Source: Oikopleura dioica (Eukaryota; Animalia; Chordata). Taken from it: DNA of 64,000 nucleotides. Of this stretch, positions 15,065 through 52,200 are shown in pieces. The notes beneath the pieces were generated by a model. That model saw nothing but the letters and a program-made list of their open reading frames with translations. It was not told the origin of the DNA and made no database searches. Position numbers and translations under genes: made by a program. The DNA lies in the NCBI GenBank assembly GCA_907165135.1, contig OU015567.1, positions 8,618,001 to 8,682,000 of the forward strand, read 5' to 3'. Positions within the stretch are counted from its first letter, which is position 1. Each line of letters starts with the position of its first letter.

Positions 15065-16125
15065 TTATGTAGGTCTGAGAACTTTGGAAATTGCAGTTCT
15101 CGATTTTCTCGTCGTTTCTTTGAGGCTGATTGTGATTACGTCGAGGATAAAGAAGACTATCGAAACAATAGTCATGATTGACAAGTAGGCGAACATGAAG
15201 CCCTTCTCGTAGCTTCTTGGAACGGTGAATTTGATGCCATCTCCTTTAGGAACTGGGTAAGTGTCCATGAAGCTCTTTACTTCTTCTGGTGTGGCGGTGC
15301 AATGATACTCATGTGGAGGTCTCATTTTCTTGTGGAAAGGCATTGGTTCGTGGTTGTGCTGATTGTCGAGAATCTTGTAAAGAAGATATAGGAAGACCAT
15401 TTCAATGACGACGGAAACGATGCCCGAGATGATCTTAAAATTACTTTAAGGTTGAAGCGTTTAATTTATGTTGCAAATCAAAAACGACAGATTTTTAATT
15501 GAGCCAGATGAATACTCGTAAAGACCATCTAAGCCTCTTCACTTACGTTGCAAACAATCATTGAGGTTTTGTAAGGAACTGTCTCTGCCCTGTTGTCAAT
15601 TCTGACAACTCTTTCTTTAATCGGTTTCGTATACTTTTCATCTGCCTTTTTCGCCCTCAATTTAGCAGTCAATTGCATCGCGTAGCCATAGTAAAGAAGT
15701 CGCGGAAGCGATATCGCAAGAATCTTAGCCGGAGTTTACTGAATGCTTTTAAATTTAAACGCACCTGCATCGTAAAGAATCGTTGAAAATTAATTGGCTG
15801 AAACTTGTTGAAGCAGAAATTTCTTGCTCCGGTGTATCCACTCGTTGGTGTAGCGAAATTAAGGGCTTCATCGCCAAAAAGCCTAAAAATCATTATTTTA
15901 TGTTAATTTTTAATTGCTAAATCTTTATTTTGGAAGTTTATTTCGACGAAAATGCAAACTTTATTTTGAAAAAGAAGCGATTTTCTTCCATGATTTCATT
16001 ATTACTTACTCTCTTGTCAAACTGATGGGCAATAATCTGGCGATAAAGTTGGTATAGTTCCAAATTTGCCCAAAAACCGAGTTGAATTGGGTCGTTTGCT
16101 CGATTTTCTTTCTCAAATCATTCAT
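15065..16125 (-). CDS. Divergent connexin (gap-junction family), 259 aa, 4 exons: 16125-16010, 15882-15765, 15723-15547, 15433-15065
   Basis: Spliced translation MNDLRKKIEQTTQFNSVFGQIWNYTNFIARLLPISLTRE|LFGDEALNFATPTSGYTGARNFCFNKFQPINFQRFFTMQ|ILAISLPRLLYYGYAMQ...SMIVCN|IISGIVSVVIEMVFLYLLY...EYHCTA...YPVPKGDGIKFTVPRSYEKGFMFAYLSIMTIVSIVFFILDVITI. It aligns with connexin landmarks (GKVW..FIFR, WGDE..F, N.CYD..PIS..RFW.LQ, P.LLY, FE..F, SRPTEK..F). Four TM segments; all introns GT-AG with matching phases; no stops. Confidence 0.88.
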
Positions 16126-16524
16126 GTTTTGACTTTAAATCTCTGTTTCCTGGCTAATCGATCCGTGAATTCACGTAATCGTAATTGTTTGGTCGGCTAC
16201 AATTGAGGACAAAGCCACTTCTTCTCTGTTCTCCAAATACGCGTTCAAAAAATCAGAAATAAAACGGAAAAAGTTAAAGAAAAATGAGCCACGATGGGCG
16301 CGACCTCTAGTTTTTTCAGCTAAATTATTATCAACGAGGACTTCAGCCATGATTTAACGATCGAGCCTGCTAAGACTAGAGATAGTAGCGGATTTATCGA
16401 GGCTTCGGCACTATTATTTTTGTCGCCAAAGTAGGGCCATCAATCCATTCACCTCGAACGCAAATTGACCATGATAAATTGCTTATGTATATTCATTATG
16501 AAAAAGTAGTATAAACAGTGTTGA

Positions 16525-17301
16525 TTAAATCGGATCATCTTTGTATTCGACTCCTTCGAGTTCAAATAGTGCTTCTTTCAGAGGATCCTTGAGCCATTGA
16601 GATGGTTCCATGTCATTTCTAGCGATCATATGCTGCTGGAGAAGAGTAAAATGCTCTGGAGGCAGAACCTTAGGAGCATCTCCCAGATATTTTGGCTGAA
16701 AAATGGTTATTTCAATAGAATTATGGCATCCTCACGGGAATATTTGCATCGTAGTAGTCAAATTGATAGATTTCCCTCAACAACTCCTTGAGATCATCTT
16801 TCCAGCCCGTCGTGTTTCCAAAGAAAATCGCCTCCCGATACATCCCTGGCTTTACGAACCGTTTCGCTGTCGGATCTGTCCAGTCAAAATCGCTCAATCT
16901 AAATTTATGATCGTTTACGAACACATTTACGAAGAGGATGATAAATTTACCGATCATTCAAAGTGTACTTCCAGTAGGGTCTCCGGTCCCATTGGAAGTC
17001 GCCCTTTTTGACTCCATTGTGATACATCGTATAGCAGCATCCAGTTATGACCATAACGGTGTAGCCTTGAGGACATGTTAAAATTTTTGAAACCGGCGAA
17101 ATGCGGAATAATTTACTGATCAGTATAATTTAGATTTTGGCGATCAAGGTCAATACCTGTAATAATGATAATTTCATTGCCATGCTTCAAAGCCTTCTTG
17201 TAATTCTCTAAGTACTGTAGCAGAACATTCCTTGGCCCTTTTGAAAAATACGTTCTTCTGGAATAAATCAGAGTCGGCCGCGCTAGGAAATTTCGCATCA
17301 T
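16525..17301 (-). CDS. Small single-pass protein with a mitochondrial-presequence-like N-terminus (possible respiratory-chain accessory subunit)
   Basis: Four GT-AG-joined exons give MMRNFLARPTLIYSRRTYFSKG...KHGNEIIIITGYTVMVITGCCYTMYHNGVKKGDFQWDRRPYWKYTLNDRLSDFDW...YKDDPI*. The N-terminus is Arg-rich and acid-free, followed by one TM helix. Resemblance to NDUFA4- or NDUFA3-type subunits is weak and unverified. Confidence 0.55.
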
Positions 17302-17395
17302 AAACTTCCTGTTTGTGTAATTTTTAATTGAGAAAGATAATGACGCACTAATTTTTTTCATCTTTTGAAGCATTTATTGGTTACTCAATATATTT

Positions 17396-19300
17396 TTATA
17401 CAGGTAGAGTTTCTTGGTGAAGGTCGATTCTTGATGGCTTGTCGAAAATGTTTAAAACCTTCAAAAATATGTCAATACGTCGACGTCAATGTTGTTTTAC
17501 CTGTATGAGCTCAGAATGCAACTCCTCGAGACGCAAATCTGACTCGGATACAGTCTGAGCCACTTGTGTACTACTGTTTATCGGCTTTCTTTGAAGTGAT
17601 CTCATCGATCGCGTCCTGCCAGGTTTTCGCGGTGCCGTGCCAACTTTTTCGCAATTTCGCGCAGATTCAGACGTCCCGCTGTTGGGTTGAGACTCTGGCT
17701 CGTCTTCCTGGCAAGTACGTGGCATTGGATCTAAAGAAACGATTCAATTTGATAATAAGAATAAAAATTTATCTGAAGCAATATCGGCAATCTTCGACCG
17801 ACAATACTGAAGTCTGTTGGATAGTCTTGAGAAGTTATCTTTTTTGATAGGTTGTCTTCTATGATTTCAGTATTTTGTGTATCAGCTGACTTACGAAGAC
17901 TCTTGGCGATCAAAATCGGCGAGTTTGGCACATCAGAAACGAGCAATTCGTCAGGGATTGAGACCGATTGATTGATGGAGGAATCCACTGACGAGTTGAG
18001 AATCGTCCCCGTCGACGATCGTTTACAAATCTGATCCAAATCGGAAAGCCGGGAGCGCAACTCGGCCAGACGCTTCGCATTCTGGGCCCGGGAAGAGATC
18101 AGACTTTGCGGCACGGATTCACGGGGATTATTTCTGAAATTCGATTAAAGGTCAAATTTAATTTATCCTCCAAAGTCTGGGTAGCGGTTTTTTGGAAGGG
18201 TAATCAGCTAATTAGCACCATAGTGCGCGTGTTTTTTTAAATTTATTGATTGTTGCCGCTGCGATTTTGCAAAAGGTCAAAGAAGGAAACATAAAAAACC
18301 ACGTGACCGTTGCCGGCGGAGAAGATTACCTGTATAAGTCGTGCATTTCCCTGAGCGCTTCACACTCGATTTCAAGCTTTTCAATTTCGTCTAGAATTTC
18401 AGCGCGACACATGTTTTGGGCGGGTATTTCGGCCACGTTCCGCACAATGGGGCTGCCTTTTTTCCTTCGAAATGGGCTAAAAACAGATTATTATTAGAAA
18501 AAAAGGGATTAAAAAGCCGCGTACTCCCAGGGGCGAAAATAGAAAATCGCACACAAAGAGGTGGGTTCTATTTATGCTCGATGGGGATTATTACCTGAGG
18601 CTGAGGCGGGCGAGATTTTCGGTGGATTGAGAAATCCCCTTCGACCGTTTTCTCAAGGTACTGAAGGCGTCTGTAAGAGCGGGTCGACAGCGCTTACGAA
18701 GGCGGGAAAAGGTCTCGCCCATTTTCGAGACTCGGCTGGTTGATTTGGTTGACTCTGATGGACTAAAAGACGATTCATTGCTGGAGAAAATAATCATTTC
18801 TTACCTAAGCGAAAGGGATGACAAACTATGCTCTTTATGAATTCTTGAAGCGAGTTTCTGAAAAGACATTGCGAATTTTTCCAGTATCTCTTCGAAGTTA
18901 ACAATCTGTAACTCGTCCAGGCCCACAAGCTCTATTCGGAAGAGTCTATTCCACCTTGGCTCTTTGTTCAGCGATCAGAAACCATTTTACTCTTTTGTTA
19001 ATTTCACGAGTTGGTAAATAACAATTTTTTTCTATCTGAAATCGTCAAACAATCTCGAATCTCGTAAAACAATCTCAATGAAAAAAAAATGAAGTGAAAA
19101 ATCGGCGAAAAGAAAATTTTACGGGAAAAGCTATTTCCCGACCGGTTCCTTGGACAATATACAAGCCGGGAACAGGCAGCTTCTGTATCGAACAATCACA
19201 CAAGTAAATCTTCTCGTTTCCGAGCGAAATCACATACGCTGCATTACTGTACGGCGTGCTTGCTTCTCCAATATGAATCGACCCTTCGAGCTCGTGAAGA
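17396..19300 (-). CDS. Multi-exon Ser-rich protein with an HR1-like coiled coil; 5' end uncertain
   Basis: In-phase GT-AG exons (~19050-18950, 18853-18801, 18780-18594, 18478-18328, 18135-17790, 17734-17503, ~17446-17396). The segment ILDEIEKLEIECEALREMHDLYRNNP...LAELRSRLSDL resembles the HR1 region of CIP4/TOCA/NOSTRIN proteins (K.KDVY.KNP). Confidence 0.5.
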
Positions 19301-22300
19301 TTTCCTGAAACAACCTCGTATTTTTCTCTGCTTTTTCGGTTTTTTTTTCAAAAATGAGCACTTGGTAGTTGGGTATATTTTTTTTGTCTAGCTATTGATT
19401 AAACCCTCCGCGGCGACAGCGCGATCGGCTTTATAAGAATAATCTCCATTTTAACTGTTCATTAAGAATTTATCAGTAATGAGCAGATTGCCCTTCGTAC
19501 TCATCCTAACACGCCCGGGGCCCCTAAGGGTTACGTTCTATCAGATGCAGTCAGCGCTGGTTCCAAAATTGTCAGTCCCAAAAAGAACCAAACTGGAGGA
19601 TCAAAACATGGTGCCGGTAACGAATTTCGAATTCGACAACTTTGGACCGAAAAACTCGATGTTTTGTCAACATTGTCGATGATGTCAGCGATGTTAACAA
19701 CAGAAATAGATTGTCGAGGATTTTTGAAGAGAATTATTGAAATAAAAGGTTTAAATTTTCAATAAACAAACTGCTAAACCTAATACGAATATAATCTCCA
19801 TTCAAAATTGATCAAGCAATTCAAAAACAAGCATTTTTTAACAAAAGAGCTTTCCACTTTTTTGAAGTACACAAAATCGAGTTGAGTTTGTGTAAAAAAT
19901 AAAGAGTTGTCTTTTGACTCCGGAAGCTTTGAATAGGCCCTCGGCTTCGCCCTAGACCGTAAAAATCGCAGTTGCGTGATGAAATGACGTTGAATCGGAA
20001 AATTGGAGGGGATTGCTGAGGAGGGGATTAATCAATAGCAGCGTGGAAAAATCAGAATTCAAGGGAAACAACACAAATAATAGAGAGGTAGATTGAGTCC
20101 TGACTCGGCTTAGTCAGAGTCTAAAAGATTTAATAAAGATTTAAAAAGCCGCTTTTGAGAGCCTCTTCGCTTCTTTCAGACCCTGACTCAGGTTTTTGTA
20201 GAAAAACTTTTTCTGAAAATATCATTAAATCTTACCTGCAAGATCGACAGAATGCATTTTGCACTCGTCTCGGCTGCAAGAAAACTCGACAAAATCTTCA
20301 TCGTTCAAAAACATCTTCAATTCTTTGATTCTCTTCTTCAGTTCTTCTCAACTTTCTCGTCTGATAATTGTCTCTGCCGCATTCTTCAATTTCACTAATT
20401 GAAACTGAAAGGCACTAAAAAGGGAAAAATATTGAAAATATCGGGAACAGACGTATCGCGGTTTCTTTTTTGGCTTTACGAGGAAAACGCGCTGCGGTAG
20501 TTCGCGGCAACGCGGATGGGGGGTGAGTAGCGCCACCAACTGAATGCGCAGCCAGGCGCAAGATTTTTTTGAAATTTCTGCCTTTTGGGGATGATCTTAT
20601 ATGAAGTTTCATTTTCATCAAGATTTCGAAAATTGGCATTTTGAGAAATCAGTCTTTCAAAATTTCAATTACCGTGGGAATACCTGATAGAGGGGACTTT
20701 TTTGGGAGTTCTATGATTGTCCGAAGCTTTTATCTGTCAATTTCATGAAGAAGACTGTTTCATCAATTTTTAAATTCGACAAGTTTCCTCACTAAATCCC
20801 TCGTGTCCTCTGTGTTATCAAAATACTTTCAAAATCTTGCCCGCAAAATCGCCAACTTCCGCCAAAAAACACTGATTTCTTCTTTCCTTACCCAATATTC
20901 TTGACCGCCTTTCCGTCGTATAATTCCCCTCTGCGGAAGCAAAAATTAAGGTCAAATTTTATGAATGCCGGCGATGTTTGGCAAGCCTAAAAATCGCAGT
21001 CATGGAAAGTCGAAAACGGCGTGGGTATTATTCAGCTTGGCTTATTCAGCCAGGGGAGGATTATAAAGCAAATTGGACACATTTCGTCGATCTCGTCAGA
21101 TTAAACCTGGGCTTGGTTACAGTTACAGTCACTTTCGAAGCACCAGTCAAGCTCAGGTGAAAACTTGAGAGTCCTAATAATTGTTATGCCCGTGAATCAC
21201 TTGAAAAGGCAGCCACCGGGTCCGTTTGTCCTTTGACCCCGTTTCCAGCAAAGAAAAACCGAAGAAGCGAGAGGACGATTCAACTGGCTGAATAAGCACA
21301 CTGATCGGGTGCCAAAAAGCAGTTTGACAAATTTGCTAAATTCGGAGAAGCGGGACGCAAATAAAAATGTCCAATCGCTCATTTTTTTTTCAGCAGCGTG
21401 ATTATATCGTCCTGATCGATTATACCTCCTCAGAATTTTATAAGAGACGACAATTTATTTTTCTCATAGTGACACCCTTATTCTTTCTTTTCAGAAGATT
21501 TGATCAAAAATACTGACTGTTAAACCTGTATTACGTCTTTCAAACTCACCTTGAACTTGTTCTTTCAGCAAATTTCTATGGTAATCTTTGCGAAAAAAGC
21601 TGGACAAAGCTCACATTCAGATTTTTCTCCTTTGAGGATACCAACAAGCAGGATACAATAAAACCGCAAAACTATCGCGTCTCACAAAAAAGACAATTGG
21701 GGTCAACTTGAGGCGACAATTTTTCCGGTCGCATTTTGTTTCAGGGCTTGATTTCAATCTACAGTTACTGTGCTCTTCTGGATATAGAAGTGGCGGTGCT
21801 TCAGAGAAGCTTTATTATTTTACGAATCCAAATTGAATGAAAAGTTTTCCGTCAAGATTATTTGTTCCGAAAGGGCGAGGTCAGCTGCTTCATTTCCCGG
21901 GAAACTTTTATTTTATTGAGTGCCAAATTTGTGCGTTTTTGTTTGAATAAACAGATTGATCAAAAGAGTTGGAACTGAGGATGACTCCAACTGCGCCAAT
22001 TGAATATTTTTCGACTTGTTTTAATTTTTCTTTGTTCTTCTGAATTATTAAGACTTGTTTGAAGTTTTGAAATGTGGAAGCATGGGGCCATCGATTTTTC
22101 ATTAGATCGGGGGTCTTGGATGACAGCTTTTAGCTCGTCTTTTAGCGTAACTTTATCTATTATTTATTTTTGACACATGCTTTAAGACTTTTATTTAAAA
22201 AAAAAGATGTAATCAATTATTTAAGTTTTAAACAAACGAAAAATTAATAGAAAGTATTTTATCTGATTTCTTCTTTTTCAGAGCGGTGGTAGATTTCAAA

Positions 22301-22740: not shown

Positions 22741-25700
22741 ATGAGAGCTCTATTTCTTCTTTTTTACTTATCAGAAGCAGTGACCAACCTCAGGGTAAGC
22801 TCAAGAAACAAGTTAACATGGGAAGAAGAAGATCAGTCAGTTGCAACGGGAATTAATCAAAATAACACTTACTATTTGATTATCGTCCAAAGCGGGTCGC
22901 CGGAGCAAGACTTTAAAAAAGCTGTATCGAAAAAGGCTGAGTATAATGTCAAGCCTTTTCAAGAGCCAGAAAAAGGGAGACCCGAAGGGGCAAATCATCT
23001 GACAATAATGCCTCTTTCTCGAGAGAATGGGATGAAGAAAAAAGTGGTCCACATCACGCTTGAGCAAAAGAATTTGCCAAAACTTCAATCTTTCAGGAAA
23101 GATTCTTGAAAAATCTAAAATGGTAAGAGTTGCGGACAAACGTATAAATTTTCAAATCTCAAAAAGCGAAAATAAAGACCTGCTTCCTCCAACAGGTTTA
23201 TACTCGTCAAACATCGATTATTTCCGGTTCACTATCGACTGGCGCCCTTCTTCTAGCGACGAAAGACAATTGTTCTATGTCAGACTATACGAGCTTGGTT
23301 ACAGTATGTCTAATCCAAAAGAAACTTGGATTAGAGATTACATGACTCGATCTCCTTACTTTTCTCCGTTCATGCTGAAGTCAGCGATGTATCACAAAAT
23401 TGAGATCTACACCCTCAAAGACTCAACTCCTTATGGCTACGAACGGTCCGTCTCAGCTGCAATCTTGATGGAAGTCAAGACTTTGGGAGTTGCCCCGCAG
23501 ATCGAGAGCTGTGAGCATTTCTACTGCGACCAGGATGATAGCGAAAGGCAAGGAAGACAGGTTAATGTTGATAGCCAATCATGCAAAGCGCTAAATTCGC
23601 TTTGCTGGAATGATGCCGACGACAACTCCAACGACGGAGAATGCTATACGAAGTTGTCTAACGAAGAGTGTCATCCCAATCCCCTCTGTCGAACCGTGAA
23701 AAAGGATCAAATCAGCTGCCTAAGAGTTAATGGAACTTGTCCCATCTCATGCTGCGAATCTGAAGATCAGATCAATTGCTACAAAGCAAGAAAATGTGAA
23801 GCTCGATATTTACCCGACGGTCGTTACGTCTGTGATACTGAAAGCATCGAATGCAGAGCCATCTGCAATCCCGGATTCATAAACATCGGCAAAGACATAG
23901 TCACGTGCACAGACAACGGTTGGGATGGACGAGGTGAGTGCGTCCGTCCCAGCTGCGGACCTCCCCAGCTTCTTGCTTCCTATCCAGCAACTTTCTCCAG
24001 CTGCACGAATCAAGACTTTGAGGGAAGCCAATGCATGATGGACTGCGATGACATCACTGAAAACGGAAAAGGAGCGCGGCAGTTTCTTCATCCTTGGAAT
24101 AACAAGAAAATTACTTGCAAAAAGGTTGGCGAAAGAGAATATGAGTGGCAAAATGAATATTCAAACAAGGACAAAGTCCATCCAGGTTGCTTGAACTACA
24201 CGTTTTTTCTTCAAACTGAAGGGGTTGGTATTGAAGCTGAAAGTGAAGCATCGACGTATATTTGGGCACACTGGCTGTTGAACATGAATAACATCTTTGT
24301 CTGCGCTGAAGGGGATGAAAACAGCTTCATTTGCGACGTCGGAACTTGTATTGCAAGCAGATTTGTCTGCGATGGCTTCGACAACTGCGGTGATGGTTCT
24401 GACGAGAAAAACTGTGAAATAATATTGAAAGATAAGAGCGGATCAATCACGACTTCCTCTTTCGAGTTCTATGTCGAGCCTAAATTTGTCAACATTAAAG
24501 TCGTACGAGAAGACGGAGTTGATGACAACGCCCAAATTGACAGCGGAGTTGAAGTATTAGACATCGTCGACGGCCGATATAAAAAACTTTATAAAGTCAC
24601 AGGGGCAACAACCAACACTCAGTACCGAGTCACTGCTAGCTGGAACAATTTAGAAAAGAAAGAGCTTCTGGTAACAACTGCTCTCATCAAACCGGTTCAA
24701 GTTAATCATGTCAACAAGGATGAAAATGTAGAGATAGAATGGTCGATGGATGAGTGGAGTGATGATGATGTAGCTAATCTACGTGAATTCATTTATAATG
24801 TGATTGTTTCCGACAGTAGGTCCTTGGTAGAAAGTTCCCGTAAGAGAAGAGAGGATGAAAAAGAACCAAGAAATTGTGTCAACAGCTGTCGGGATGTGAA
24901 CATTGGTCCGAACATCCGCAGTGTCAAATTCACTGTACCACTTGATAAGGAATACAGTTTCAGGGTAACATTAAACAAGGAAATGTGATTCATTCAAAAC
25001 CGTTTTTAGCTGACTGCAGTCTTCAAAAACGGCAAACAGACCGACACCCTCGTTCTCAATGGAGAAACCCGGGAACCAGCGATTAAGAAAATAACTCAAG
25101 TTGGAGGTCGGTCAACGATGGCGAGTTTTGAGGTTGAAGCTGAGATCGGAGCTTCTGTTGAAGGAGTCTTGGGAAAACTTATCTCAAATGAAGACTGGAC
25201 TTTTGAAGTCGAACGAGAAGATGACGCGCCAGAAAATATTATCCAGCTTAAAAACTTGCCTGTCAACGAGGCGGATCAGATAATTCTAGCGCCGAAACTC
25301 AAAACTTTCCACGATCAGACCTTGCGATTGGGTGCTGAAGTGACCCTCGACTTCCGAACACTGCCTCTTCTCAATCCAGAAATTGTCAAACGAACCAATG
25401 ATTCTCTGACTGTATCTTGGACGAAGCATGAACAATTTGTCAAATATGAAGTGTTTATTTCAGGAGTTTTTCCAGATATCGGCCAAAGTCAAGTCCAAGA
25501 AACCGTTTCTTGCATAACAGAATGTCAGAATTCAATTCTCTTTGAGAACCTCAATCGAGAAACTTTTTATAAAATCGAAGTTTTCGGTTATGAAGACGAT
25601 GAAAATTATTTCACTGATGGTGAAACGATTACTGTACCTACAATCGGCACATTTCCAACACTCACAATCTCGCTGACGCGCAAGACGACTACTACAGCCG

Positions 25701-28700
25701 ATTTCTCCCTCTCATTTTCGTTCCCTTGCAAAAACATGCAACTCGTTGAGGAATCAAAAACGCCTGGCGGATACATTCCTCACCCTTCAGTATACTTAGA
25801 GGAGACACGAGCCCTCGGATTAAAAACAAACACGAGCTGTGATTCGGAGTCAATGACTTGTCATGCATCAGGGCTTGTTCCAGAGCTTGAACACACGATA
25901 AGACTTTCGGCAACGTGTGGAGAAGAATCAAACAGAGCTACAGTTCGGTCGACCTTGAAATTTGTTACCAACAAGCTTCCTCCCTTTTTCGACGATCTTC
26001 GCATATCATCAACTGAGATCACTGGCTTTTGGACAGAAGACGACGAAGCTCAAAAATACATCATAGAGATCGAATATCCAAATGAAGATCCGATTAAAAT
26101 TGAAAGAATGAATGACAAAAGTCAAACTTCTTTTAACATCAACAATGATTATAGAAGCGACAATTTCACTCTCAAAATCAAATCATACTATAGCGAAACA
26201 AGCGAAACTGACTACGGAATCATTCCCAATCTACAATTTCAGCCTCCAATCACTGATTTCAAGCCAACATATCTCAACCCAACGATGGTCAACCTTTCCT
26301 ACGATCATCAACAACTGGCCGTTAGAGTTGAAAGTCAGATATCAGAACTTCAAGATGGATTTTCAGGAGAACCAGATATAGAGGGCAAGTACTGGACTTT
26401 GTTTCTAGTTAAAGATGATCCAGCTGAAATAATTGAAGCGAGACTTCGGGTATTCTATGAAGATGCACTGACGAATACTCTTTACAAAAATTCATATGTC
26501 TGCAAAATGACATTTCTTCCTACTGATAAGGAGCCATGCGTAGGACATGAGACAGTTGTGACACGACTTTCTGATTGGAATATATTGACAGTGGAAACTG
26601 CAGTGCGGATTTTTCCGGAAAAAGTAGAAGGACAAGGTGGCTTCGGGTTGATTTCTTGGTCACATGAGCGCAATTATAGCGACACTCTTATTCCTATTTA
26701 CAATATCAGAATCTGCGAAGAAGGTGTGTGCACAAAAGCATTCGAAGAAAATGGAAAATGGGAGGATGCAGGATCGACGACGGAAACATTTTTCAATGCA
26801 ACTGGTGATCCAGAAGGTTGGCCCGCTATTTTCACTGTTCAAGCAATTTATCAAGAAGCTGATCCGTTGATTGAGTCAAATATTTTATTCCCGCTTCAAT
26901 TCGAAAAGGGAGTCGCAATTCCTGATATCGAAATCATAATTGACCATGAAACGATTCGCTCAACCTCGATTTTTGTAAAATGTAAAACGCCATATTTTAA
27001 AGAAAATAAGGATCAGGAAAACGAAAACGTTATACCAGCCAAAACAGTTGTTTTGAAAGCGACGAATGAAGACGATAAGGACTCTCCTCATGAGTGTAAA
27101 GTGAAAAGATCTGATGATCAACAATCGGGTGATTGTACGTTTCGAGGACTCCTGCCTTCTACAACTTACGACTTCAATCTACGAGTGGAATGGGATGAAT
27201 TCGGAGCTTTATCGATCCAGAAACCAGCTACAACAGCTCCTGCCCCACCATACGCAATGGAAGAAATCGCAAAGACATCTTCCATCGAGCTCAAATGGTC
27301 AAATAGATGGAAGAGTAAAGAGATATCCCGTCATCTGAAAGGATATGAAATCAGTGCTATAACCGCTGATGACACAGAAGACAGGGCCGAACGAAAATTT
27401 GGGACAGAAATTGCCGAATGGTTAGACGCTAATTTAACGACGACGGCAAAAATATTGATCTCGAACAGCTCGGAAGCCACTTATCAGAAAGAACTTTTCC
27501 CTCTTACTGGTTATAAGATTACAGTCGTCGCTGACTTGGGTGAACTTGGCAAAACTGACGAGTTGATTATTGAAGGACGAACTGCTCTGCCACCACCTGA
27601 TCTCAAATTTTTCAGCGTTGAATCTTCTTCCGTCACCGTATTTTGGCCTTTTCATGAGGTAGAACCTATTGGATTTGCGAGTACCATGGACAGTGAGGCT
27701 GACAATGACGAAGATAATACAATTAACGGAAATCCGATAAAAAGCAAAAATGACGGCTATTACCTAACTTACGTAAGCGATCTTTTCCCAAAGAAAGACG
27801 TTACCATTAATGTCTCTGTTTGGACTGAAAACAGACTCACAGATAAAGACAGTAACTGGGCAGAGTATCCGTGGAAACGACTTGAATATTCTGATGATGC
27901 GTCTATCTTAACCACCTGTCCTCCTCAGATGAAGATCGAAGTTGGCAATGTTCGAGATATTTCAACAACTCTTGAATGGGAGGATGTTGATGGTGCAGAT
28001 GAATACATCTTAATCTATGAATACAATACTACTGAGGGAACCGGGAAAATCAACAGTCCTTACTTTGCTGGCGGAAACATCGTTCATTTAGACAGCGGAA
28101 TCACCAAGAAAACGATCAGCCCTCTTGTTCCTTTCACAACTTATAATTTCTTAATGAAAGCAAAGTTCGACGCGAAAACTGAGGCAGATATCGATAAATA
28201 TACAGACATGCTTCGGCTTTCAATTCGAACCGCAACTGAAGCTCCTAACATAACCCTCTTCAACGAGACGCTCACTAGCTCTCTGGTGACTTTCAACTGG
28301 CCTAATTGTCATGAACTCAAATGTCCTTCTGAAGCGGGTTGTCCTTCTTGCGCCACAATAGAAAGAAGAAAAAGACGAAAAAGAGACACGCATTTTTTCG
28401 ACTTCAAGTACGATGTTTATCCCATTCAGTGGCAAGTGAAAATAAACGGTTTGAACATCACCGGACATGGAGACAGCTACATTGATGATGATGAAAGTGT
28501 TCAAGAATTAGGTAATGGTACAACCTGCAGAGTATATGATACATCGGGCTATCCAACTCCCCAGTTTGAAAATCTACGTCCCGGCACTACTTACAAAGTA
28601 GAAATCATCGTCGAATTCAATGAATTTGAGGGCAAAAAAACTCTTGTTAGGACGGACGAAAATAGCGAAAACCCGGAAATTATCAAAGAAATCGATGCCA

Positions 28701-30590
28701 AAGTTGAAGTTATCTACGACTTGCAAACACTGGATCCTAATGTCAATGTTTTGCTTTTGATCGACAACACAGATGCAGTTGATGGGCGAAAAGAAATAGA
28801 AGAAGATGTCCTGGCTTCGTTGCCATTAGTACTGAGACAGGAGCAGATTGATTTCGCAGTAGAACAGGCACTGAAAAACAGGTTTGTTTAGAATTTCTAC
28901 TAACATACCCCACCCCCAAGTTTTCGCGCATTCCTCGGTACATTTTCCGTAATTTACTCTTCCTGATTTGTTCAAAACCCCCGAAATTTACGCCGCTTAA
29001 CTTTTCTGCGTGCGCCCAAATTTACTCTCGCGGCGCTGATTGGCTTCGTCGGTTAATTTTCTGTGTGCGCAAAAGTCTTGTTTTGCTCGCTCCGGGCAAA
29101 GAAAGGATGATCTTTTATAAAAAGCCAGATTCCCTTATAGGGCAGCCCTATCTTATGTTATCTTTGATAAAATTATTGTTTATTGTTACAGTGAAGTTTA
29201 TAAATATTTGATAGAACGTTATGCTACCTGCGATAGATGAAAACGACTTCTGCGGAGCAAAATCCTGGCCTCAATATTTTAAGTTAATGGTACGATTTTT
29301 ATGTGTCCAAGCCACGAAAAATTTTCAATTCTAGTGCCTCGAGTTCCTGAATAAGACTGAAATCCCTTGGTTTAATATGGCGCTATGATTGAATAACGCG
29401 CCCGTTAATGAATCATTAGCGTTGACGCCTATTTCAGCGGGTCGCGAGTAAATTTGGGCGCACGCGGAAAAGTTAGGAGAAGAAATTTGGAAACGCGGGG
29501 AAACGCGAGGAAGCGTAAATTTCGGGGGTTTCGGAAAAGTTATGAAACGTAAACTTGGGCGAAATACCACGAATTGCGCGGAAATTTAGGGGGGGGGGGT
29601 ATGTTATGATAAGTTTGTTCTTTCAGTGTTTACTGGAAACGCCAGATGAGCTTCTTACAAGAACTGATGTCTCGACACAAGTATATTGGTGACGATTCTT
29701 CTCGTTTTGCGATGAGTCTTTACGAGGGATATCAAAACTTGGACGAAATTCATACATTTGAGTCTCTTCAAGAAGTAGAATATGTAAAAGAACTGCTTGG
29801 AAATGTTACTTATAACGGCGGAACATTTATGCCCTTTCATGGGCTTTCTTATGCGGTAAGATTACAATCCAAGAAATGCGTCAAAAGAACTATATTTAGG
29901 CGGTCAAAGGCATTTCAACAGGACTTTTGAATTCTACCCAGACTGAAGAAAGACCAAATGTGATAGTAATGACCATTTCGAACACTCTTTATCTTCCAGC
30001 TTCAATCGCAAATGTCATCGAAGAAACCATCATTAAAACCAGCCGTCTTCTCAGATTCTGCTCGGATGCTACGTTGATTCCGGTTGGAGTCCATCCACCT
30101 AAGAGTTCTAGGGGCATTTATGGCGAGAAGTTCGAAGAAATGTTGAGATTGCTTGCCTGCTGGGAAGAGGAAGAACAGAGCATGCTGGAAGATGAAAACT
30201 TCAAGTGCGATGTGAACACTGGATTCTGCACCTATGAAAAAGGCGGTAACGAGGACTACCAGAAAAACAAAATCAATGAAATAAAGGGGAAAGAATGTCC
30301 CAATGTCCACTTCGTCCCACAAGATGGGAACTACATAGAAGTCGTTGACAGGAAATTGGTTTAGAAATTTTAGATAAACAAATTTCACTTAATTTCTAAC
30401 CAATGAAAGCATAAAACAACTTATTGTTGATAAAACTCTTGAAGCTCCTATTGATCCCAATCAACCGAAATACATCATCCCAAGAAAGAATGACGACCGG
30501 CAAAGAACTTGCCTAGCTCTTCTCGCGAAAATGACGGGAAAATCTCTTGAAAGTCGAGCCTTCAAAACATTTCGCGAAGGAGAACTGTAA
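22741..30590 (+). CDS. Large secreted mosaic protein: signal peptide, FN3, Cys-rich region, 2 sushi/CCP, LDLa, multiple FN3, C-terminal vWA
   Basis: Signal peptide MRALFLLFYLSEA; sushi (CNPGF..G...TC...GW); LDLa (FICDVGTCIASRFVCDGFDNCGDGSDEKNC); many FN3 repeats (ORF 25118-28891, e.g. LTVSW, YKIEV, LLPSTTYDFNL, LRPGTTYKVEI); vWA strand VLLLIDNTD continuing in 29627-30356. No TM segment. The junction near 23095 and the frame of the last exon (stop at 30516 or 30590) are unresolved. Confidence 0.8.
28903..29604. mobile_element. Intronic MITE (702 bp) with long imperfect TIRs and TA target-site duplication
   Basis: ta|acataccccacccccaag ... ggggggggggggtatgt|ta. Internal IR pairs cccccgaaatttacgc/gcgtaaatttcggggg and gcgtgcgcccaaatttactc/gagtaaatttgggcgcacgc. 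Removing it leaves a ~43-nt intron (28882-29626), the typical local size. Confidence 0.8.
29238..29340. mobile_element. Fragment of the 14127-14701 MITE family embedded in the 28903-29604 element
   Basis: tgaaaacgacttctgcggagcaaaatcctggcctcaatatttt...atgtgtccaagccacgaa...ttctagtgcct matches the reverse complement of 14570-14701, with an internal deletion. Confidence 0.75.
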
Positions 30591-43200: not shown

Positions 43201-46200
43201 GCATCTTGCAAAGCAGTCATCAACGTCACTAGTTTAACACCAGCTTCCTCTCGCTTGGCAACTGTACTGCGCAACTGAGAACAAGCAGATTCGATGTTTT
43301 TCTTGGCAAGAGAGAACTCTCGCTGGAGGGATGAAATCATTGAGCCGAGCTCTTTTGGTGGGGTTTTGTCAGAATAAAGCTTTGCGGCTTCTTTCCCGGC
43401 TGCAAAGACTTCTTTTTCCTTTTGGCAGATTTGACGATGGAGGGATTTTAGTTGGTCAATTTCCAAATGTTCCAAATCAGCTAAAAATGATTCAATTAGT
43501 CTTAAATACTGGAGATTTCTTACATGGATCAGTGATAACCGAGAGGAGGTTTTCATCAAACCAAGATTTTAGCTGGTTCAATTTTTTGAACGCCGCTTCT
43601 TTCAGCTCTGCTGAATCGATTTCATCCTTGACCAGGTCTTCCAAGAGATCCTTCTGATATTGCGCGCGTGAATGTAAACGCTGATGAAGAACTGTGCCCA
43701 CGTGACCGAGGGGAATGCTCATGTGTTCCAGTTGCAAGATTTCGTCGATCGTCTCGTTAGATTTATCCAAGAGCTTCTCGAACTTGTTTTCGGAAGATTT
43801 GAACCCGGAAGATTTTTCTTTATCAAGAGAATTGGCGATTTCGTCGAGCGAGGATTCAATTTTCGCCGCCATTGGCTCAACAATTGACCACCTGCTTGCC
43901 TTAGCTTCCAACTCTGTTCGAATCATCGCGGCGTTAGATTTCGTTTCATCCCAGCGCTCATTGAGAACCTGAAAAGAAATCTTATTGTTGCAAAGTACTA
44001 ATTTTTTACCTCGTATGCAGAAAGAAGCGATTGCTGAGAGCCAAGCGCTGCGGCAACTTGATCGAGTTGCTCCAATCGTTCCTCGCAACACTTGCTCATT
44101 TCATCGGTGTAGCATCTGAACGCTTCAGCAAGATTCGTTGCTTCCGTCGCATTCTGAGAATTGGCGTCTTTGTAGTTGTTACAGAATTGATCCGCCATTT
44201 TGAGCTCCTCGCGAATTTCATTGATGACTTTCTCGCAGCTCTGCCATGCGGCAGCAGCATCGCTGATGTCTGATTTCATTCCAGAAGCTTGGTTCAACAG
44301 TTGATTCGCTTTTTGTCGTATGATAGTGATAGCTTCTTTGACACGGTCTTGGGCGAGATGATTTGTTGATGGAGAGAGGGAGAGACACTGGCTTGCTGCT
44401 TCGAATTCGTTCAATTTATCAATCAGAACTGATTGAACATCTTCCAGTTCTTGATCAGTGAATTTGAGCTCGTCCTGATCTGGCATCACAAAACCATTAC
44501 AGTCAGATTCAATCAGATCTAATCGAGCAGAAGCAGCGCCCAATTGACCGGAAACAGAGTTTAATCTTTCAGCGTAGGTCTGTCTGGCAGACAAAGCTTC
44601 AGACATGAGTTTCTTTTGCGAATCAAAGTCGGATAGCAAGCTTGGTTTAAGAGTTTCCAAGGTTTTTCTGGCATTGTCACGCTCATCGTCTGGAATTCGC
44701 TCATCTTCCTCCACTGCTAGAAGTTTTTCGAGATGATCAAGCCTCGAGACGGTCTCGTCTTCCAGAAGGTTGAGTCTCACGATCATTTTTTGAACTTCAG
44801 AGACCTGCAGTGGGAGACTTTGCGGCGCTGTTATGGCGATTTGAGTCTCTCGGAGCCATTTGAGCTCACTAGAAATAATTGAACTAAAGTCTCTGAGGCC
44901 AGCGAGTTTTGACTGGCACTCGCGAATGATCGCGTTGCACTCAGCCATGTGTCGACCGACTTTGTCGTTGATTTGGCTGATTCTGTTAGGCTCATTGTTT
45001 CCGAGTTTCTGTGCGAGAATCGTGATTTCCTTCAAATCTTGGCGAAGTTTCGCAAGATCTGCGATTGTCACGTGGCAGCAAGCGAGTTTCTTTTCAATTT
45101 CATCTTCTTTTGGCGAAGACATGGAAGAAAAGGCGACTGGGGTGGCAATATCGTCAAGAGTACTAGCGGCTGATTCATATTTACATTCGTACTCTTCTTT
45201 TAGCTTTGCGATTTCTTCCTCCCTGGCGAGGAGTTCACGGGCGATGTGCTCTTGTTGATGGAATTTTGTCAAGAGTTTCAAATGCCTTTCTGCTTGCCAT
45301 GGCTGTCCAGCTTGCTTGAGCGACTCTTTCATCGAACGAAGTTCTTCGATATCAGGCCGGATTTTGTCCAGCAAGTCACTCATCTCCTTCGGCGAGGATT
45401 GTTTAGCGGCTACTTCTGATAAGAACGCTTCGACTTGGGCAGTTGTTCGCTCGTACTCGCGGCGGGAAGTGATGAGTTTCTCAGTCATTTCTGCTTTTTT
45501 CGCGGCGTTGGCTTGTATGCTAAAAATGTGTAATCAAATGCTGGTTTAAAAAAATTTACTTGTCAAGTTTCTGTTTTGACTTTTCAATGCGCTCTTGGAG
45601 AATGTTGATTTCTTGAGGAGGACTTGTGTCTGAGATCTCGTGGGCTTTGGATTTGACTGTTCGAAGAACATTTGCAATTTCAGGGATTTCGCGCTCCAGC
45701 TGATTGTATTGCTATTTTTGGATATTTAGATTACAGAGAAGTTGTTTTTTTATGAGAAGAAAATAGAAGTTCTAAATGAATTCTATTGATGATGACGATT
45801 TCAACGTGAAATGATGGGATTTTTACAAAACATAAGTTTTCACGATGCTAAAAAATACCGGTTGATCTATCCACTGTTCCTTTAGCTGCGTTTCTAGCTC
45901 AGCGATGGTGCCTGCCGACGATTCTGGGGTCAACTGAACTTCTGCTTCTTGAAGCCATCGCTTGACTCTGTTGAAATCGGCGTTGCACAATTCTCGCATC
46001 GCGAGTGCATGTTGCAAGTCCTTGGTGATATTGTCGCACTCGGATCGAAGTTTTTGGTAGCGCTCTTCAAGATCTAACGCAAAGTTTTAGTAAATTATTT
46101 TAAAAGAAAAAATCAATTAGCAAAAGAAAATATATTTGTTAGTGTCCACTCTGCTACAGAACAATATAGAAAAAGCAAACCCAAACATATTTCACCTAAG

Positions 46201-49200
46201 CCACCTAGTGGCGCCCCATCACGTGCAGTTGAAATAATGGTGCGGAATTTAAGAACCCTTCTTAATTTATTCTGACCTTTAACATAAACCGCATCGTCAG
46301 CTGTTTCCTTCACAAGGACCTTAAAATTAATTAAGACTTTGAAACAAGATGTAATTACCTTTAGTGAGCCAACTTTGGCCGTCAACTCTTCTAGTGGTTT
46401 TTGTCGACTAAGGAGCTCTCTGGTAAAGTTCTTGTAGTGGCTGATGAGCTTCGCCATTGAGTCCGGATTGACAGGGAAGAGTTTGAGGCGGAGTTCCATT
46501 CGTTTTTCGGCTTGGTCCATCCAGGAATTCAGCTCGCGGCCTTGGTTGTACCACCGCTCGTGATGTGCTTTGAGTTCCTCGAGCTTTGCGATCCGCTCAT
46601 CTACGGCGCTCATCGCCGAGTCAAGTATTTCTTCTGCTTTAGAATCAGTCGAATCAATCTCTTCCTGCTCAATAGTCGAAAAACCAAGCTTCACTGCTGC
46701 TAATTGAATCTGCCGCAATTGCTGGAATTGTGAGTTGAGTTGAGCAAGCTCCTGCTGCGCTGCACAAGCTTTTTTCAATTGCTCCTCCAATTCAGCGATT
46801 GAAGAGTTTTGCTCGACGGGGATCGTAGTCTCCGCCAATTTCTTCTGCGCTGCTTCGATGAATTGTGCAAGTTTCTTTACAAAATCACACTTTTCATTTA
46901 TCAAATCGCGCAAATGAGCCGAGCGGTTTTCAGAGCGGCTGATGATGTCAACAAGTCGAGATTTTTGATCGTTGACGATTGTTTGCCCATTCTCGTATTG
47001 AGTCGGCTGAAGCAATGATCGAATGCTACCCAAGTCGGTGACGACTTTTGAAATTGGACCGGTAATACTCTTTGCTCGATCGACGAGCTCTTCGAACCTG
47101 GCAAGCCTGGTTTCTGAGTTTTTATCGATCTTCGAGTTTTCAGAAAACTCAGACTGAAGTTGCTCAAGCTCTCGGTTGTAGGCAACTATTTGGACTTGAA
47201 TACCTTTCGCCGCTTCGATCGATTCATGCATCTCATCGAGTTCTTTTTCGGCTCTTTCTTGAAGCACTTCGAGTCGGGCTTTCAGCTGCTCAACTTCCTT
47301 TACTTGATCGAGCTCGTTCAATTTCTCCTTGAAATCCATGCACTCGTGAATGATGATATTGAGGTCTTTAGCCTTTGCTTCCAGAATTGGAACAGCTTCT
47401 TCGAAGGATGATCCGCTATCATGGAGATCAGTGAGCGATTCAAGTTGATTCTCAGCTTTGTGGAGCCAGGCGTCAATGTCTGCGATTGTTTCTTGCTCGT
47501 GGTCCCATTTTTCGATATCTCTCTTGATGGATTGAACTTTTCCAAGTCTCTGTTGATCCACGGCTTTTGCCTCGTTCATGACATTCTTGCCTTCTTGAGA
47601 ATCAGGTTGCTCGTGAGTGAATTCCTCACACCAGCGGATTATTTCCTGCATGTCAAATTTGATGTTCTCAAGCTGATCGAGTTGGCGGGCTGCTTGAGCT
47701 TGATCCTGAGCTTTTGGCATGTTGGAGATTGCGTTTCGTGCTTTCGACAGAGTTTGCATGTAATCCTTGACTTCTGTATTGCGATCTTTCGACTCGACAA
47801 TATCTCGTTGGCATTTAGCCAGAAGTTCCGCGACTTTCTGGTGCATTCCATTTGCTGCATCGACCAGTGGCTGCATTTTTTGATAACGGGAGTCGTCTAA
47901 TTCTGCCGCTCGGGCTGCAGAAACAGATTTTTGGAACGCTTCGACGTCTTGAAGGAGAATGGTCGCTTGAGACTCGCGTTCTAGCGCTGGCTCAGAGCAA
48001 TTGAGTATTTGCTCCTCAAGCTCTCCGATGTGAAAAGATAACTGGAACATTGTTCGCTCCAATTTTTGAATCTCCGCGAGATAGTGATTGACAGCGTCGA
48101 TTCCTTTGGATACATCATCTGCTTGTCGCCTGAGTTCCCTACCAAGCTCTTTGAACTTTCCTTGTTGTTTGTAGAAATGAGGAGCAACTTTGTCTTGAAT
48201 TTCGAGGGGCATTTTCCCAAGACGGAATTCGGCCTCGATGAATTTCTCCTTCTCACGAGCGTGATCTTTGATTTGAGCGCTGAGCTCTGCTTGCTTTTTC
48301 TTCAGCTCGCCGAGTTCTTTGCTCTCACCGATTGGATTTGAGTTCAGTTTCTTGTCCGCTTTTTCGAGGAACTGATCGATGTGTTTCTGAGCATGATCGT
48401 AATCGCACCAGTGAGCTCTTGTTTTTGTCGTTCTTCGCTGAGCAGATTGAAGTTTAGCGTAGAATTCTTGATAGCTGTCGTTGACCGATTTGCCCATTTT
48501 CTTGATGTCGCAAATTGTCGACTCAGAAAGAGGGGAACGGTTTCCTCCAGCGACGACTCGGTCACATTTGTCAACGAGACCGACAATAACGGCCCTTCGA
48601 GTCTCGCACTCGGTTATTAGCTGGTGAAGTGTTTGGAGTACTTCTTCTAAATGATCTCCCGGGTAGGGAATATTTTCGGGTGGAGTGATGGCCTCGATGA
48701 ACGTTTCATTGCTAACTTGAATCCATTGTTCGATATCTTCGATATTCAGTGAGATTTCATGAAGAGCGGATGCGGCGAGTTCGGCAGATTTTAATTTTGA
48801 CTTCGTTTGTCCGAGTAAGTTTTGGAACTTGGTCGATAGATCGTTGATTTCGATGGTGATTGCTAGATCAAGGCGACTTTTGTCCATGAGCTGACTTGCT
48901 GTTTCCGTGATTGCGTCCTTAGTCTCTTTCTTCGCCATAAACTCGTTGACCATCGATTGTAGTTCTGAGACGATGACTGGAGCATTGTTAGATTTGTCTT
49001 CGTTGATGATGATCTTGTTTCGGCTGGAGTCTTTGAGAACATCATTTTGTGATTCAAGCCATTTCAATAAGTCTTGAACACTTTTTCGCAAAAGCTCGAT
49101 TTCAGTCTTCCTCTCATTGAGTTCGCAGATTCCTGATTTCACAGAACTTTTGAGCTGCTGCCACTCATCGATGATTGGATTGTTGTACGCATCCTGACAT

Positions 49201-52200
49201 TCTGTTTCCAAAATGTTGCATTTTGCGTCGCCTTCTGGAATAACTTCGGCTTCAAAAGCAACGAGCCCGGCGAGTGATGTTTCAACATCAACACCATTTG
49301 GTTCCATGAAACCAACAACGATGGGTCGTTGATCTGCAAGCCAATCAGTAAAGTCTCGAAGTGCATGTCTTCTATCTTCAAGCAGTTCAGCTTCGCTCGC
49401 GGAAATTTGAAGCTTTTCGTTCGCTGCAGCAAGAAGAATTCTATACTTTTCCTGGGTTCGCTCTACTTTTTGTGCTGCATTTTCACATGGACCGATTGCC
49501 GCTGTGAGATGTTTTGTCTGTTTATCCAGTTGTTCGATGCAGAAGAAATGGCCATGATGATTGAAATCGTCGACGATTGTTTTCAGTCGATGCATCGTCA
49601 ATGTCGGAGATATGGTGGACTCAGAGTTGTCCGAATCAGAAGTATCACCAACTCTTTCATCAAGATTTTTCGCTGCCTTTGACAACCAACTGTTTGCCGC
49701 GGTAATTGCATCTTCCCAAAGCGACCATTGCTGAAGATTGTAGCTGAGTTTTTCTTCCGAATGACGCAACGAGTTCAAGAATGTCGACCAAACTTCTTTC
49801 AAGCTTTGAGCTTGAAGCTGAACTGCATGTTTTCCGTTTTGAGAAGTTCCCTGAAGCACCATTTCTAATCGGCTCAATGCTACTTGGACCATTCCTTCGC
49901 CTGTTTGTTGTTCGTTGGCGATTCTACGGGAATCCTTCAGTCGCTTTTCGATGCCATTCTTATCAACACCTTCTAGACCAGGATTAAGAGAGTCAATGCA
50001 CTGCTGACGTTCTTTTATCCACTCCTCGGCGCCGGCGATTTCTGTGACGAGAGTCATGTGCTGCTGGAGACGAGTTTGAGCGTCTCTCTTTGCCTGTGAC
50101 GATTGATGACAGAGTGATCTGTATGATGTCTGTAGTTCACCGACTCGAAGGGTTCCTCCTGGATATTGAACTTTGACGGCTTTTCTTTTTAATCGAAGGA
50201 ACTTGTATTGTTCGTCGGTTGTTTCTTCGTCAATAGCTTGAAGAGCAGCAAAATTGGACTTTTTCAAACCGATCGTTGCTTTTAAACCGCTCTCTGCTTT
50301 GAGTCTTGATTCCATTTGACTCAGCCAGTGGAACAGCTCGAAACAAGACTTGTCAAAGTCCTTGAGTCCGTCAATGTAGCCTACTACTGATTGTTTTGCT
50401 TCATCCAACTCGGAAACAAAGTGCTTCCACTTTTCTTTTAGTTGCCGGATTGTTGAGCGATTGAGATTGACCTGTTCGCTGATGAAAATTACTGTTCCTT
50501 TGTCGGCAAGATTATTGAGGTCCTTCAGCTTATCATTTCCTTGCTCTAAGCAGGCGCCGGTTAACTCGTTCAAAGCGATGATGATTTTCTGTGCTCCTTC
50601 CAAATCACCTCTCGGAGTCGACAACTGTTGTAGCTGAGCAGTATGTCGCCGGATAAAACTGTCAAACTGACTTGATTTGAGCTTGAATTGAGAACGAAGA
50701 TCTGTTTCGATCTCATTCCGGATCTTTCCAAGCTCTGTTTTCTTGACTGTAAATTCTGATAGCGTTTTGGTAACGGCTTCAGAAATCTCTGTTGCGTCTT
50801 CATTCGCAAATTTTCTACAGAGAACGTTCAATTGAGTTCTGATTGGATTTTGCTTTGATGAGAGTTTTTTCATTTTATGCTCTGCCTCAACCAGCTCCGG
50901 GATCTTTTCAGTGATATCTTCACTTGTTGGTAGAGAAATTGCATTAAGATCCTCGGAGAACTCCTTCAATTGGAACTCGATCTTTTCTTGCTCCTTTTGG
51001 AAGCCATCTTGGTATTCTTCAAGTTCAGCCAATGCATGACTTATTGATTCAGAAGCTTCATCAATTGAAGCTTCCCATTCTTTCCAAGAAGCTTTTTGCT
51101 GTTTGGTCTCTGTCGCGATAAGATCATACCCAGCTGGAGCAGTGTCATTCTCAAGAGACTCAGCAAGTGTTACAGTCGCTTCAAGCCTCGCCAGTCCATC
51201 AATTTTCGCTTTTTGAAGCTCTTCAATTTTCGCCACTTTCTTTTGAAGATGATAACGATCCTTTTCTCCGACAAGATCAGACCAGCGACTTAGCTCTTCT
51301 TTCGCTGAATTGATCCATTCTTCGAGCTCATCGCCTGCAACGATCCATCGCTCATGCCGGTCGCGGATTTCACTCGCTCTTCGTATTTTCTCATTAAGAT
51401 CAGCGCGGATAACGTTCACTCTATTCGTCAACGGGGCTAATACATTGCTTGCAACTACAGAGGAAGCTGTACTCATGTCCATGTTAACTGGCTCGCCGGG
51501 AAGATCCGATGTAAAATCGTTCGTTTGGTAGCCAGACTCGAGCATGAGCGTTTCAGAGGCTGTTATTTTTGCCTCAACTTCGTTCAGATCATTTTCCAGC
51601 TCAATTAGTCTCTCGACCCGCTGTTTCTTCTCCTTGAAATCGGATGGAACCGGTGGATCTTCTTCGAGAACCGCTTCGATGTCAGCTAGTGTGTTCTCAA
51701 GTTCAACGCAGGATTTTGCTAACTGCGAAAGTTCAGAATTTCGAAGCTCAGATTTTGCACGTAAGTTTTCCAACTTATCGACGAGCTCTTCAAAAGCATG
51801 CTTCATGATTTCCATGTCTTCTTGTTGTTTAGTGCGACCAGTTGGAGACATGAAGTTGCAGAGTCGCTCTGCCCGGCCTAGGGCCTTGTGGATCTTCACT
51901 TCTCCTTCTTGTTTCTCTAGAAGAACGAGATCAACAAGATTTGTGACATTTTGGCACTCGGTAACGCTGGAGACGTTGTCGAGGTCGGCATCAAGGGTGC
52001 TGACTCGGTCGAGGATAGATTTGATCCATTTTCTGAGATTTTCTTTCGAAATGTTGAATTCATTCAGCTGCTCCTCGAAGGAAACGAGATTTCTCAGTTT
52101 ATCATCAACTTTCTTTTCCAAGTTGTTGAAGTCGTTAACGGTTAGTTGGATTCTTTTGCCCGGGACAGTTCCAATGTCGCCATCGGCGATGTCCATCACT

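Follow-up and report, generated by a model that had tools for sequence, protein, structure and literature searches.

A connexin gene of Oikopleura dioica that retains a single conserved pair of extracellular-loop cysteines

Introduction

Connexins are treated as having a signature of six extracellular-loop cysteines, arranged as C-x6-C-x3-C in the first loop (E1) and as C-x4/5-C-x5-C in the second (E2). Natural departures from this pattern are nevertheless on record. Cx23 (GJE1, the epsilon connexin) has four loop cysteines, the second cysteine of each loop being missing (PMC4729916), and anthozoan connexin-like domains have two cysteines per loop (bioRxiv 10.64898/2026.06.13.731801). As Cx23 with its four cysteines is a known exception, we take the six-cysteine pattern as a signature of the family and not as a criterion of homology. 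Mutagenesis of Cx32, Cx43, Cx37 and Cx46 has led to conflicting views on whether the loop disulfides serve docking only or hemichannel gating as well (PMC4729916, PMC9266770). In surveys of the connexin family, predicted sequences are left out when they do not show the proper cysteine pattern (PMC7914757), so that variants such as the one considered here are filtered out by design.

In the literature searched we found no description of a connexin with one loop pair or of the connexin repertoire of O. dioica, a prior description being possible, and no paper on the extracellular-loop cysteines of Ciona connexins. Mikhaleva et al. (2019, Dev Biol) are said to have treated the O. dioica gap junction genes. 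Here we follow up a first-pass annotation of a stretch of 64,000 nucleotides of O. dioica DNA (hereafter the window), which had pointed to an intact connexin that keeps only one of the three loop disulfide pairs.

Results

The connexin gene lies on the minus strand of the window (16125..15065) and consists of four exons separated by GT-AG introns. Splicing of these exons yielded the uninterrupted reading frame that the first-pass annotation had described, of 780 nt, or 259 codons and a stop, and the product (P0013) is letter-identical to CAG5112100.1 (Oidioi.mRNA.OKI2018_I69.chr2.g6354.t1, O. dioica Okinawa), encoded on chromosome 2 (OU015567.1) of assembly GCA_907165135.1 at approximately 8.63 Mb. 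Because the earlier model equals the public annotation, g6354 is not new as a gene; it is already annotated as a connexin, and it is the reduction of its loop cysteines that appears to be undescribed in the literature searched. Exon 1 (16010..16125, with the ATG at 16125) encodes residues 1-38 and two bases of codon 39, covering the N-terminal helix and TM1, and ends at a phase-2 position shared with the cDNA-supported ortholog from the Bergen lineage; it is followed by intron 1 (15883..16009; 127 nt, GTAAGT..TTTTAG). Exon 2 (15765..15882, residues 39-78) carries loop E1 and the start of TM2, and the splice sites of the 41-nt intron 2 (15724..15764, GTGCGT..GCTAAG) are preserved in a 94%-identical metagenomic contig (L004). 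Exon 3 (15547..15723, residues 79-137) holds TM2 with P85, the cytoplasmic loop and the start of TM3, and is separated by intron 3 (15434..15546; 113 nt, GTAAGT..TTTAAG) from exon 4 (15065..15433, residues 138-259, stop codon TAA at 15065-15067), which encodes TM3, E2, TM4 and a C-terminal tail of about 20 residues, as short as had been claimed.

Upstream of the start codon, on the same strand, lies a 5' UTR block (16126..16250) that is conserved with a Bergen-type cDNA (L003; roughly 80% match by eye). It includes a stretch of about 40 nt with 3 mismatches, while the coding pS between the same lineages is 0.83 and saturated. This suggests that the block may be a constrained regulatory or RNA element.

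The product was recognised as a connexin both by its sequence and by its predicted fold. It matched the Pfam Connexin family (PF00029) over residues 4-160 with 69.4 bits (E 4.9e-19), well above the gathering threshold of 31.3 bits, and its orthologs scored 63.6-68.3 bits; when single exons were searched, exon 2 alone matched Connexin with 18.8 bits, below the threshold. No match to Pfam Innexin (PF00876) or to a Pannexin-like family was found in the protein at E up to 0.1, and a weak, sub-threshold match of TM3 to Baculo_11_kDa was rejected as a hydrophobic-helix artefact. A search against all PDB sequences returned 34 distinct chains, all of them connexins, the best being Cx46 (E 4.8e-13), and a profile of relatives reached E 2e-25 against the PDB, with a weak second HMM stretch over E2-TM4. 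The AlphaFold model (mean pLDDT 71.9, pTM 0.64) consists of an N-terminal helix, TM1, an E1 helix containing C62, TM2, TM3, an E2 hairpin with strands at 179-182 and 204-207, and TM4, which is the four-TM connexin fold with its N-terminal helix, E1 helix and E2 beta-hairpin. In a Foldseek search of the PDB with this model, the best 50 of 85 matches (E <= 0.001) were connexins without exception, with TM values by target of 0.74-0.84, and the model resembles Cx43, Cx46 and Cx26 at a TM of about 0.8. The Bergen ortholog gave the same AlphaFold and Foldseek outcome, and in the ESM Atlas the ortholog falls among connexin clusters, the innexin clusters being only distant look-alikes (score 0.77, TM 0.59). 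The profile search and the protomer model, both of which the first-pass annotation had proposed as checks of its intact connexin, bear it out together with the PDB sequence matches. The end-to-end alignment claimed at the same time stands by sequence for residues 4-160, to which the significance against connexin profiles is limited, E2-TM4 being recognised only through the fold and the weak HMM stretch.

Residues invariant in nine of nine aligned relatives include R30, P33, D43, E44, Q78, P85, E148, R210, E213 and S228. With the canonical vertebrate connexins (Cx26/GJB2, Cx43/GJA1, Cx46/GJA3) the protein shares significant homology over NT-TM1-E1-TM2-TM3, the same four-TM fold, the G-D-E motif at the start of E1, the TM2 proline (P85) and the buried polar residues R30, Q78, E148 and S228, all of which are kept. 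On the basis of the alignments and of the Cx26 structure, we take these four polar residues to correspond to the buried R32/Q80/E147/S199 network of Cx26, whilst P85 is presumably the TM2 proline kink and G-D-E presumably the acidic motif at the extracellular pore mouth. Judged by sequence and modelled structure, the gene is a connexin. It differs from its canonical vertebrate counterparts in having two loop cysteines instead of six, one residue more in E1 (as aligned with Cx46), an 11-residue insert in E2, a very short tail and three introns within the coding region. Orthology to GJE1 was not seen, the best PDB matches being alpha and beta connexins with nothing epsilon-specific about them.

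The only cysteines of the protein are C62, C136 and C182, and of the six-cysteine hallmark of the loops two positions remain. In the HMMER alignment to Cx46, T50 (codon 15849..15851, minus strand, as are all codons given here) falls on C54, the first E1 cysteine, A58 (15825..15827) on C61, the second, and C62 (TGC, 15813..15815) on C65, the third, which is retained. In E2, the profile and Cx46 alignments place V198 (15251..15253; Y-P-V-P on W-P-C-P) at the position of the second cysteine and F206 (15227..15229) at that of the third, whilst the retained C182 (TGC, 15299..15301) is the first E2 cysteine in the alignments to a six-cysteine and a four-cysteine relative (see below) and has a preceding aromatic residue, as in E-Y-x-C. 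These alignments agree with the earlier reading of E1 as T, A and C and with the loss of the second and third cysteines of E2. The loop disulfides of Cx46 are C54-C192, C61-C186 and C65-C181 (PMC9266770), a pairing that runs first to third, second to second and third to first; therefore C62 (E1C3) and C182 (E2C1) are partners, as had been proposed. C136 (15550-15552, in exon 3) is replaced by alanine in the Bergen ortholog, which instead has an extra cysteine in TM3, and C136 and C143 vary among the aligned relatives, unlike C62 and C182, so that only the latter two are invariant in the nine aligned sequences.

The insert occupies residues 183-197 (15254..15298), between the first and second cysteine positions of E2, where there are 15 residues compared to 4 in Cx46 and Cx43; it is partly predicted as a short helix and is the fastest-evolving part of the protein. 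A sequon scan of the window protein found no N-x-S/T in E1 or E2, as the first-pass annotation had stated, the sole sequon being N23-Y-T, at the end of TM1 that faces the cytoplasm. In the Bergen ortholog an N-M-S sequon (residues 168-170) lies within E2; it is missing from the window protein and the other orthologs, and the six-cysteine relative has N-A-T (residues 272-274) in the long insert of its E2. Among these tunicate-type connexins, sites for loop glycosylation are therefore gained and lost.

The Bergen ortholog is CBY20482.1 (P0006), which is 66% identical to the window protein and is encoded on FN653015.1; we regard it as the positional ortholog because it lies in a block that is colinear with the window over about 6.7 kb, with a nucleotide identity of roughly 70%. 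The automatic UniRef label of the Bergen copies reads 'Connexin N-terminal domain-containing protein'. Its three introns, as defined by an intron-less transcript contig, occupy the same codon positions and phases as those of the window gene. Altogether four intron-less transcript contigs were found in RNA data sets, each a member of the orthogroup with the pattern of one cysteine per loop, and one of them ends with AATAAA and a poly(A) stretch. Oligo-dT RNA reads from another O. dioica lineage lie on the exons and the 5' UTR block with 90-95% likeness, mostly as partial matches, and the overhang of such reads encodes L-L-A-I-M-V-P-R-L, the Bergen-type TM2. The question of expression that the first-pass annotation had raised is thus answered by polyadenylated ortholog transcripts and by reads of another lineage; since the reads come from another lineage, expression is shown for the ortholog and not for the window's own allele.

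Apparent read joints at 15408/15653 and 16086/16198 were rejected as introns, being gaps across diverged sequence. Alternative exons that would restore the missing cysteines were also rejected, as the cDNA-supported introns coincide and the intron-less ortholog transcripts carry the same cysteine pattern. One metatranscriptome protein (P0002, L001:743-936) has an odd C-terminus owing to a 2-nt deletion relative to L008; its original frame runs to the normal ...LRPTG end, and we attribute the odd end to an assembly error or a rare allele and not to a separate isoform.

Around the gene, window positions 16004-22103 are colinear with a piece of the Bergen scaffold (L002:4230-10122) at about 70% nucleotide identity, over a region that holds the upstream neighbour gene (407 aa in the Bergen annotation) and intergenic DNA. 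As judged from this alignment, local synteny around the connexin has outlasted the genome scrambling between O. dioica lineages. Two long uninterrupted open reading frames were noted elsewhere in the window, one of 3024 aa on the minus strand (46113-55187) and one of 1257 aa on the plus strand (25118-28891). A scan for bacterial promoters and terminators was set aside as irrelevant for eukaryotic O. dioica DNA.

The nearest relative outside the orthogroup, 38% identical to the window protein, is a connexin of 284 aa (P0003) from a transcript contig of run SRR26381747. It resembles the window protein in its CFN-FQPINF-RFF and IPRS-E motifs and in its long E2 insert, but it keeps four loop cysteines (the second and third of E1, the first and second of E2), only the E1C1/E2C3 pair being lost. 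The same run contains a connexin of 363 aa with six loop cysteines and a very long cytoplasmic loop (P0004); therefore reduced and canonical forms coexist in at least one organism. The four-cysteine set is the state to be expected of an intermediate and, as far as sequence comparison goes, fits a stepwise loss in pairs. The Oikopleura clade resembles Cx23 and the anthozoan domains in being made up of natural connexins with a reduced set of loop cysteines; Cx23 has lost the middle pair only, whereas the Oikopleura clade has lost the middle pair together with E1C1/E2C3 and is left with one pair. A scan of metagenomes turned up a single locus, which is nearly a copy of the Bergen gene, a search of a representative library with exon 4 as the query gave four proteins, and word-indexed searches with the profile of relatives and with P0004 as the query added no further homologs.

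When the window is compared with the Bergen-type sequences, saturation is seen at synonymous sites (pS 0.78-0.85; pN 0.21-0.23), and among the unsaturated pairs of four Bergen-type cDNAs dN/dS was 0.11-0.23. Compared with the metagenomic contig L004, which is 94.45% identical, the window has 18 synonymous and 4 non-synonymous differences in 220 codons, the divergence being 2.5-4% in exons and 6-17% in introns and the 3' flank. The dN/dS comparison, which had been proposed as a check, thus indicates purifying selection among the orthologs, and the open reading frame is preserved in at least five diverged lineages. The earlier claim of selection rather than decay stands on these figures and on the conservation of the cysteine pattern across saturated lineages, and the gene is a functional one. 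The paired loss, from which that claim had been argued, is by itself weak evidence, because two cysteines left over at random, one in each loop, would be partners with a chance of 1 in 3, or of about 1 in 6 when the nested four-cysteine intermediate is taken into account; pairing is only supportive, and the weight of the argument therefore lies on conservation and dN/dS.

Constraint is unevenly spread along the protein. When the window protein is compared with its Bergen ortholog, identity is highest in the transmembrane segments (TM1 0.90, TM2 0.81, TM3 0.77, TM4 0.75), followed by the C-terminal tail (0.71), the cytoplasmic loop (0.68) and E1 (0.61), and is lowest in E2 (0.38). The dN/dS of the unsaturated pairs was 0.00 for TM1, 0.03 for TM2, 0.10 for the cytoplasmic loop, 0.11 for E1 and 0.40 for E2, with 0.48 for residues 183-204. 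E2 is the least constrained structured region, yet its second strand (KFTVPRSYEK) is well conserved and its dN/dS stays below 1. In ordinary connexins the two extracellular loops rank with the best conserved parts, and variation is greatest in the cytoplasmic loop and the tail. Relative to these, the order of constraint read from the present sequences is inverted for E2, with TM1 and TM2 nearly frozen. The polar TM1 (W-N-Y-T-N-F-I-A-R) to which the first-pass annotation had drawn attention is real; mean Kyte-Doolittle values are 0.72 for TM1, 0.65 for TM2, 1.73 for TM3 and 1.49 for TM4, so that of the four only TM2 is less hydrophobic. No other segment of the protein is as strongly conserved as TM1, which fits a pore-lining role and speaks against a non-channel protein. 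AlphaFold places a beta-hairpin in the cytoplasmic loop at residues 115-128 (15574-15615; pLDDT about 70). The better conservation of this loop compared to E2, unusual for a connexin, hints at a conserved cytoplasmic partner or a gating element.

Discussion

The descriptive part of this study, that is the connexin homology and fold, the mapping of the cysteines, the conservation of exactly two of them, the purifying selection and the constraint profile, is in our view very nearly certain. For the function of the protein we propose a series of linked steps. The protomer would still assemble into a pore-forming oligomer, in which one disulfide, C62-C182, would hold the E1 helix and the first strand of E2 together. 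The surface on the distal side of E2, which ordinary connexins use for docking, would no longer be constrained, and docking would be weakened or lost. Because this docking surface would no longer be held, the channel would most likely work for the most part unpaired in the plasma membrane, rather than as a homotypic gap junction of the classical kind. We put forward this non-docking, mainly unpaired channel tentatively, as a reading to which we lend not quite even credence. It has indirect support in E2, which is remodelled by the 11-residue insert and, with an identity of 0.38 and a dN/dS of 0.40, is less constrained than any other structured region. The other option of the first-pass annotation, a non-channel protein, is disfavoured by the constraint on the pore-forming TM1 and TM2, the strongest in the protein (dN/dS 0.00 and 0.03). 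The likeness to pannexins that it had drawn may be kept as a functional analogy, that of a junction-family protein possibly working unpaired. Pannexins are an unrelated family of innexin homologs, to which the window protein has no Pfam match, and they are kept from docking by N-glycans on their loops, whereas the window protein has no loop sequon.

Innexins dock with two cysteines per loop. Experimental work on connexins with altered loops points both ways: Cx43 without extracellular cysteines forms hemichannels and no junctions, which counts for a non-docking channel, and zebrafish Cx23, with four cysteines in its loops, reportedly makes hemichannels and junctions alike, which counts against it (PMC4729916). 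The statement in the first-pass annotation that Cx23 is mainly a hemichannel former thus reflects only part of the literature, and since Cx23 forms junctions and innexins dock, fewer disulfides need not abolish docking. The Oikopleura protein might accordingly still form gap junctions, homotypic or, with other connexins of Oikopleura, heterotypic, through a remodelled interface that needs one loop disulfide, and its fast-evolving docking surface could reflect lineage-specific co-evolution. E2 is indeed not neutral (dN/dS 0.40), the strands of its hairpin are retained in the predicted structure, and electrical synapses and gap-junction-dependent calcium signalling in Oikopleura are described in literature cited in PMC3682859 and PMC8618301. 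We nevertheless consider junction formation unlikely, though well worth keeping in view, given that among the structured regions E2 is the least conserved and bears its 11-residue insert at the hairpin tip. The residues aligned to what we take from the Cx26 structure to be the E1 and E2 docking positions of vertebrate connexins are not conserved, and no connexin is known to form junctions with fewer than two loop disulfides.

The loss of cysteines does not simply give working hemichannels, as single loop-Cys-to-Ala mutants of Cx46 reach the membrane and remain closed, hemichannel activity being absent (PMC9266770). Such mutants, present at the membrane and unopened, would be matched by a non-conducting or modulatory subunit, which might alter the docking or gating of canonical connexin partners or act intracellularly; the identities of the cytoplasmic loop and the tail, unusually high for a connexin, also hint at conserved cytoplasmic partners. 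We regard such a role as improbable, since it is the pore-lining segments TM1 and TM2, along with the G-D-E motif at the entrance of the pore, that are under the strongest constraint, as a conducting pore would predict. A decaying or mis-annotated copy, whether a pseudogene or a gene model missing cysteine-bearing exons, is close to refuted, for although the mapped RNA reads all come from another lineage and the Pfam match ends at residue 160, at least five diverged lineages have an open frame, a dN/dS of 0.11-0.23 and the 18:4 ratio of synonymous to non-synonymous codons against the close relative L004 reject a pseudogene, the intron positions are identical to those of the Bergen ortholog and cDNA-supported there, and intron-less polyadenylated ortholog transcripts encode the same cysteine pattern.

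The one-pair connexin is a natural test of whether a connexin can function, perhaps only as an unpaired channel, with a single loop disulfide. Together with the four-cysteine relative and the six-cysteine connexin it provides a ready series for separating the roles of each disulfide in folding, gating and docking, and the same series of two, four and six cysteines would show whether connexins, like innexins, have yielded a dedicated non-junctional channel. It is conceivable, if on balance doubtful, that larvaceans evolved an obligate unpaired connexin channel by the stepwise loss of whole pairs, from six to four to two loop cysteines. If this is true, no natural connexin before the Oikopleura protein would have been shown to fold and gate with only one loop disulfide, and the history of this protein would be the connexin counterpart of the transition from innexins to pannexins, achieved by dismantling the disulfide-stapled docking scaffold rather than by adding a glycan.
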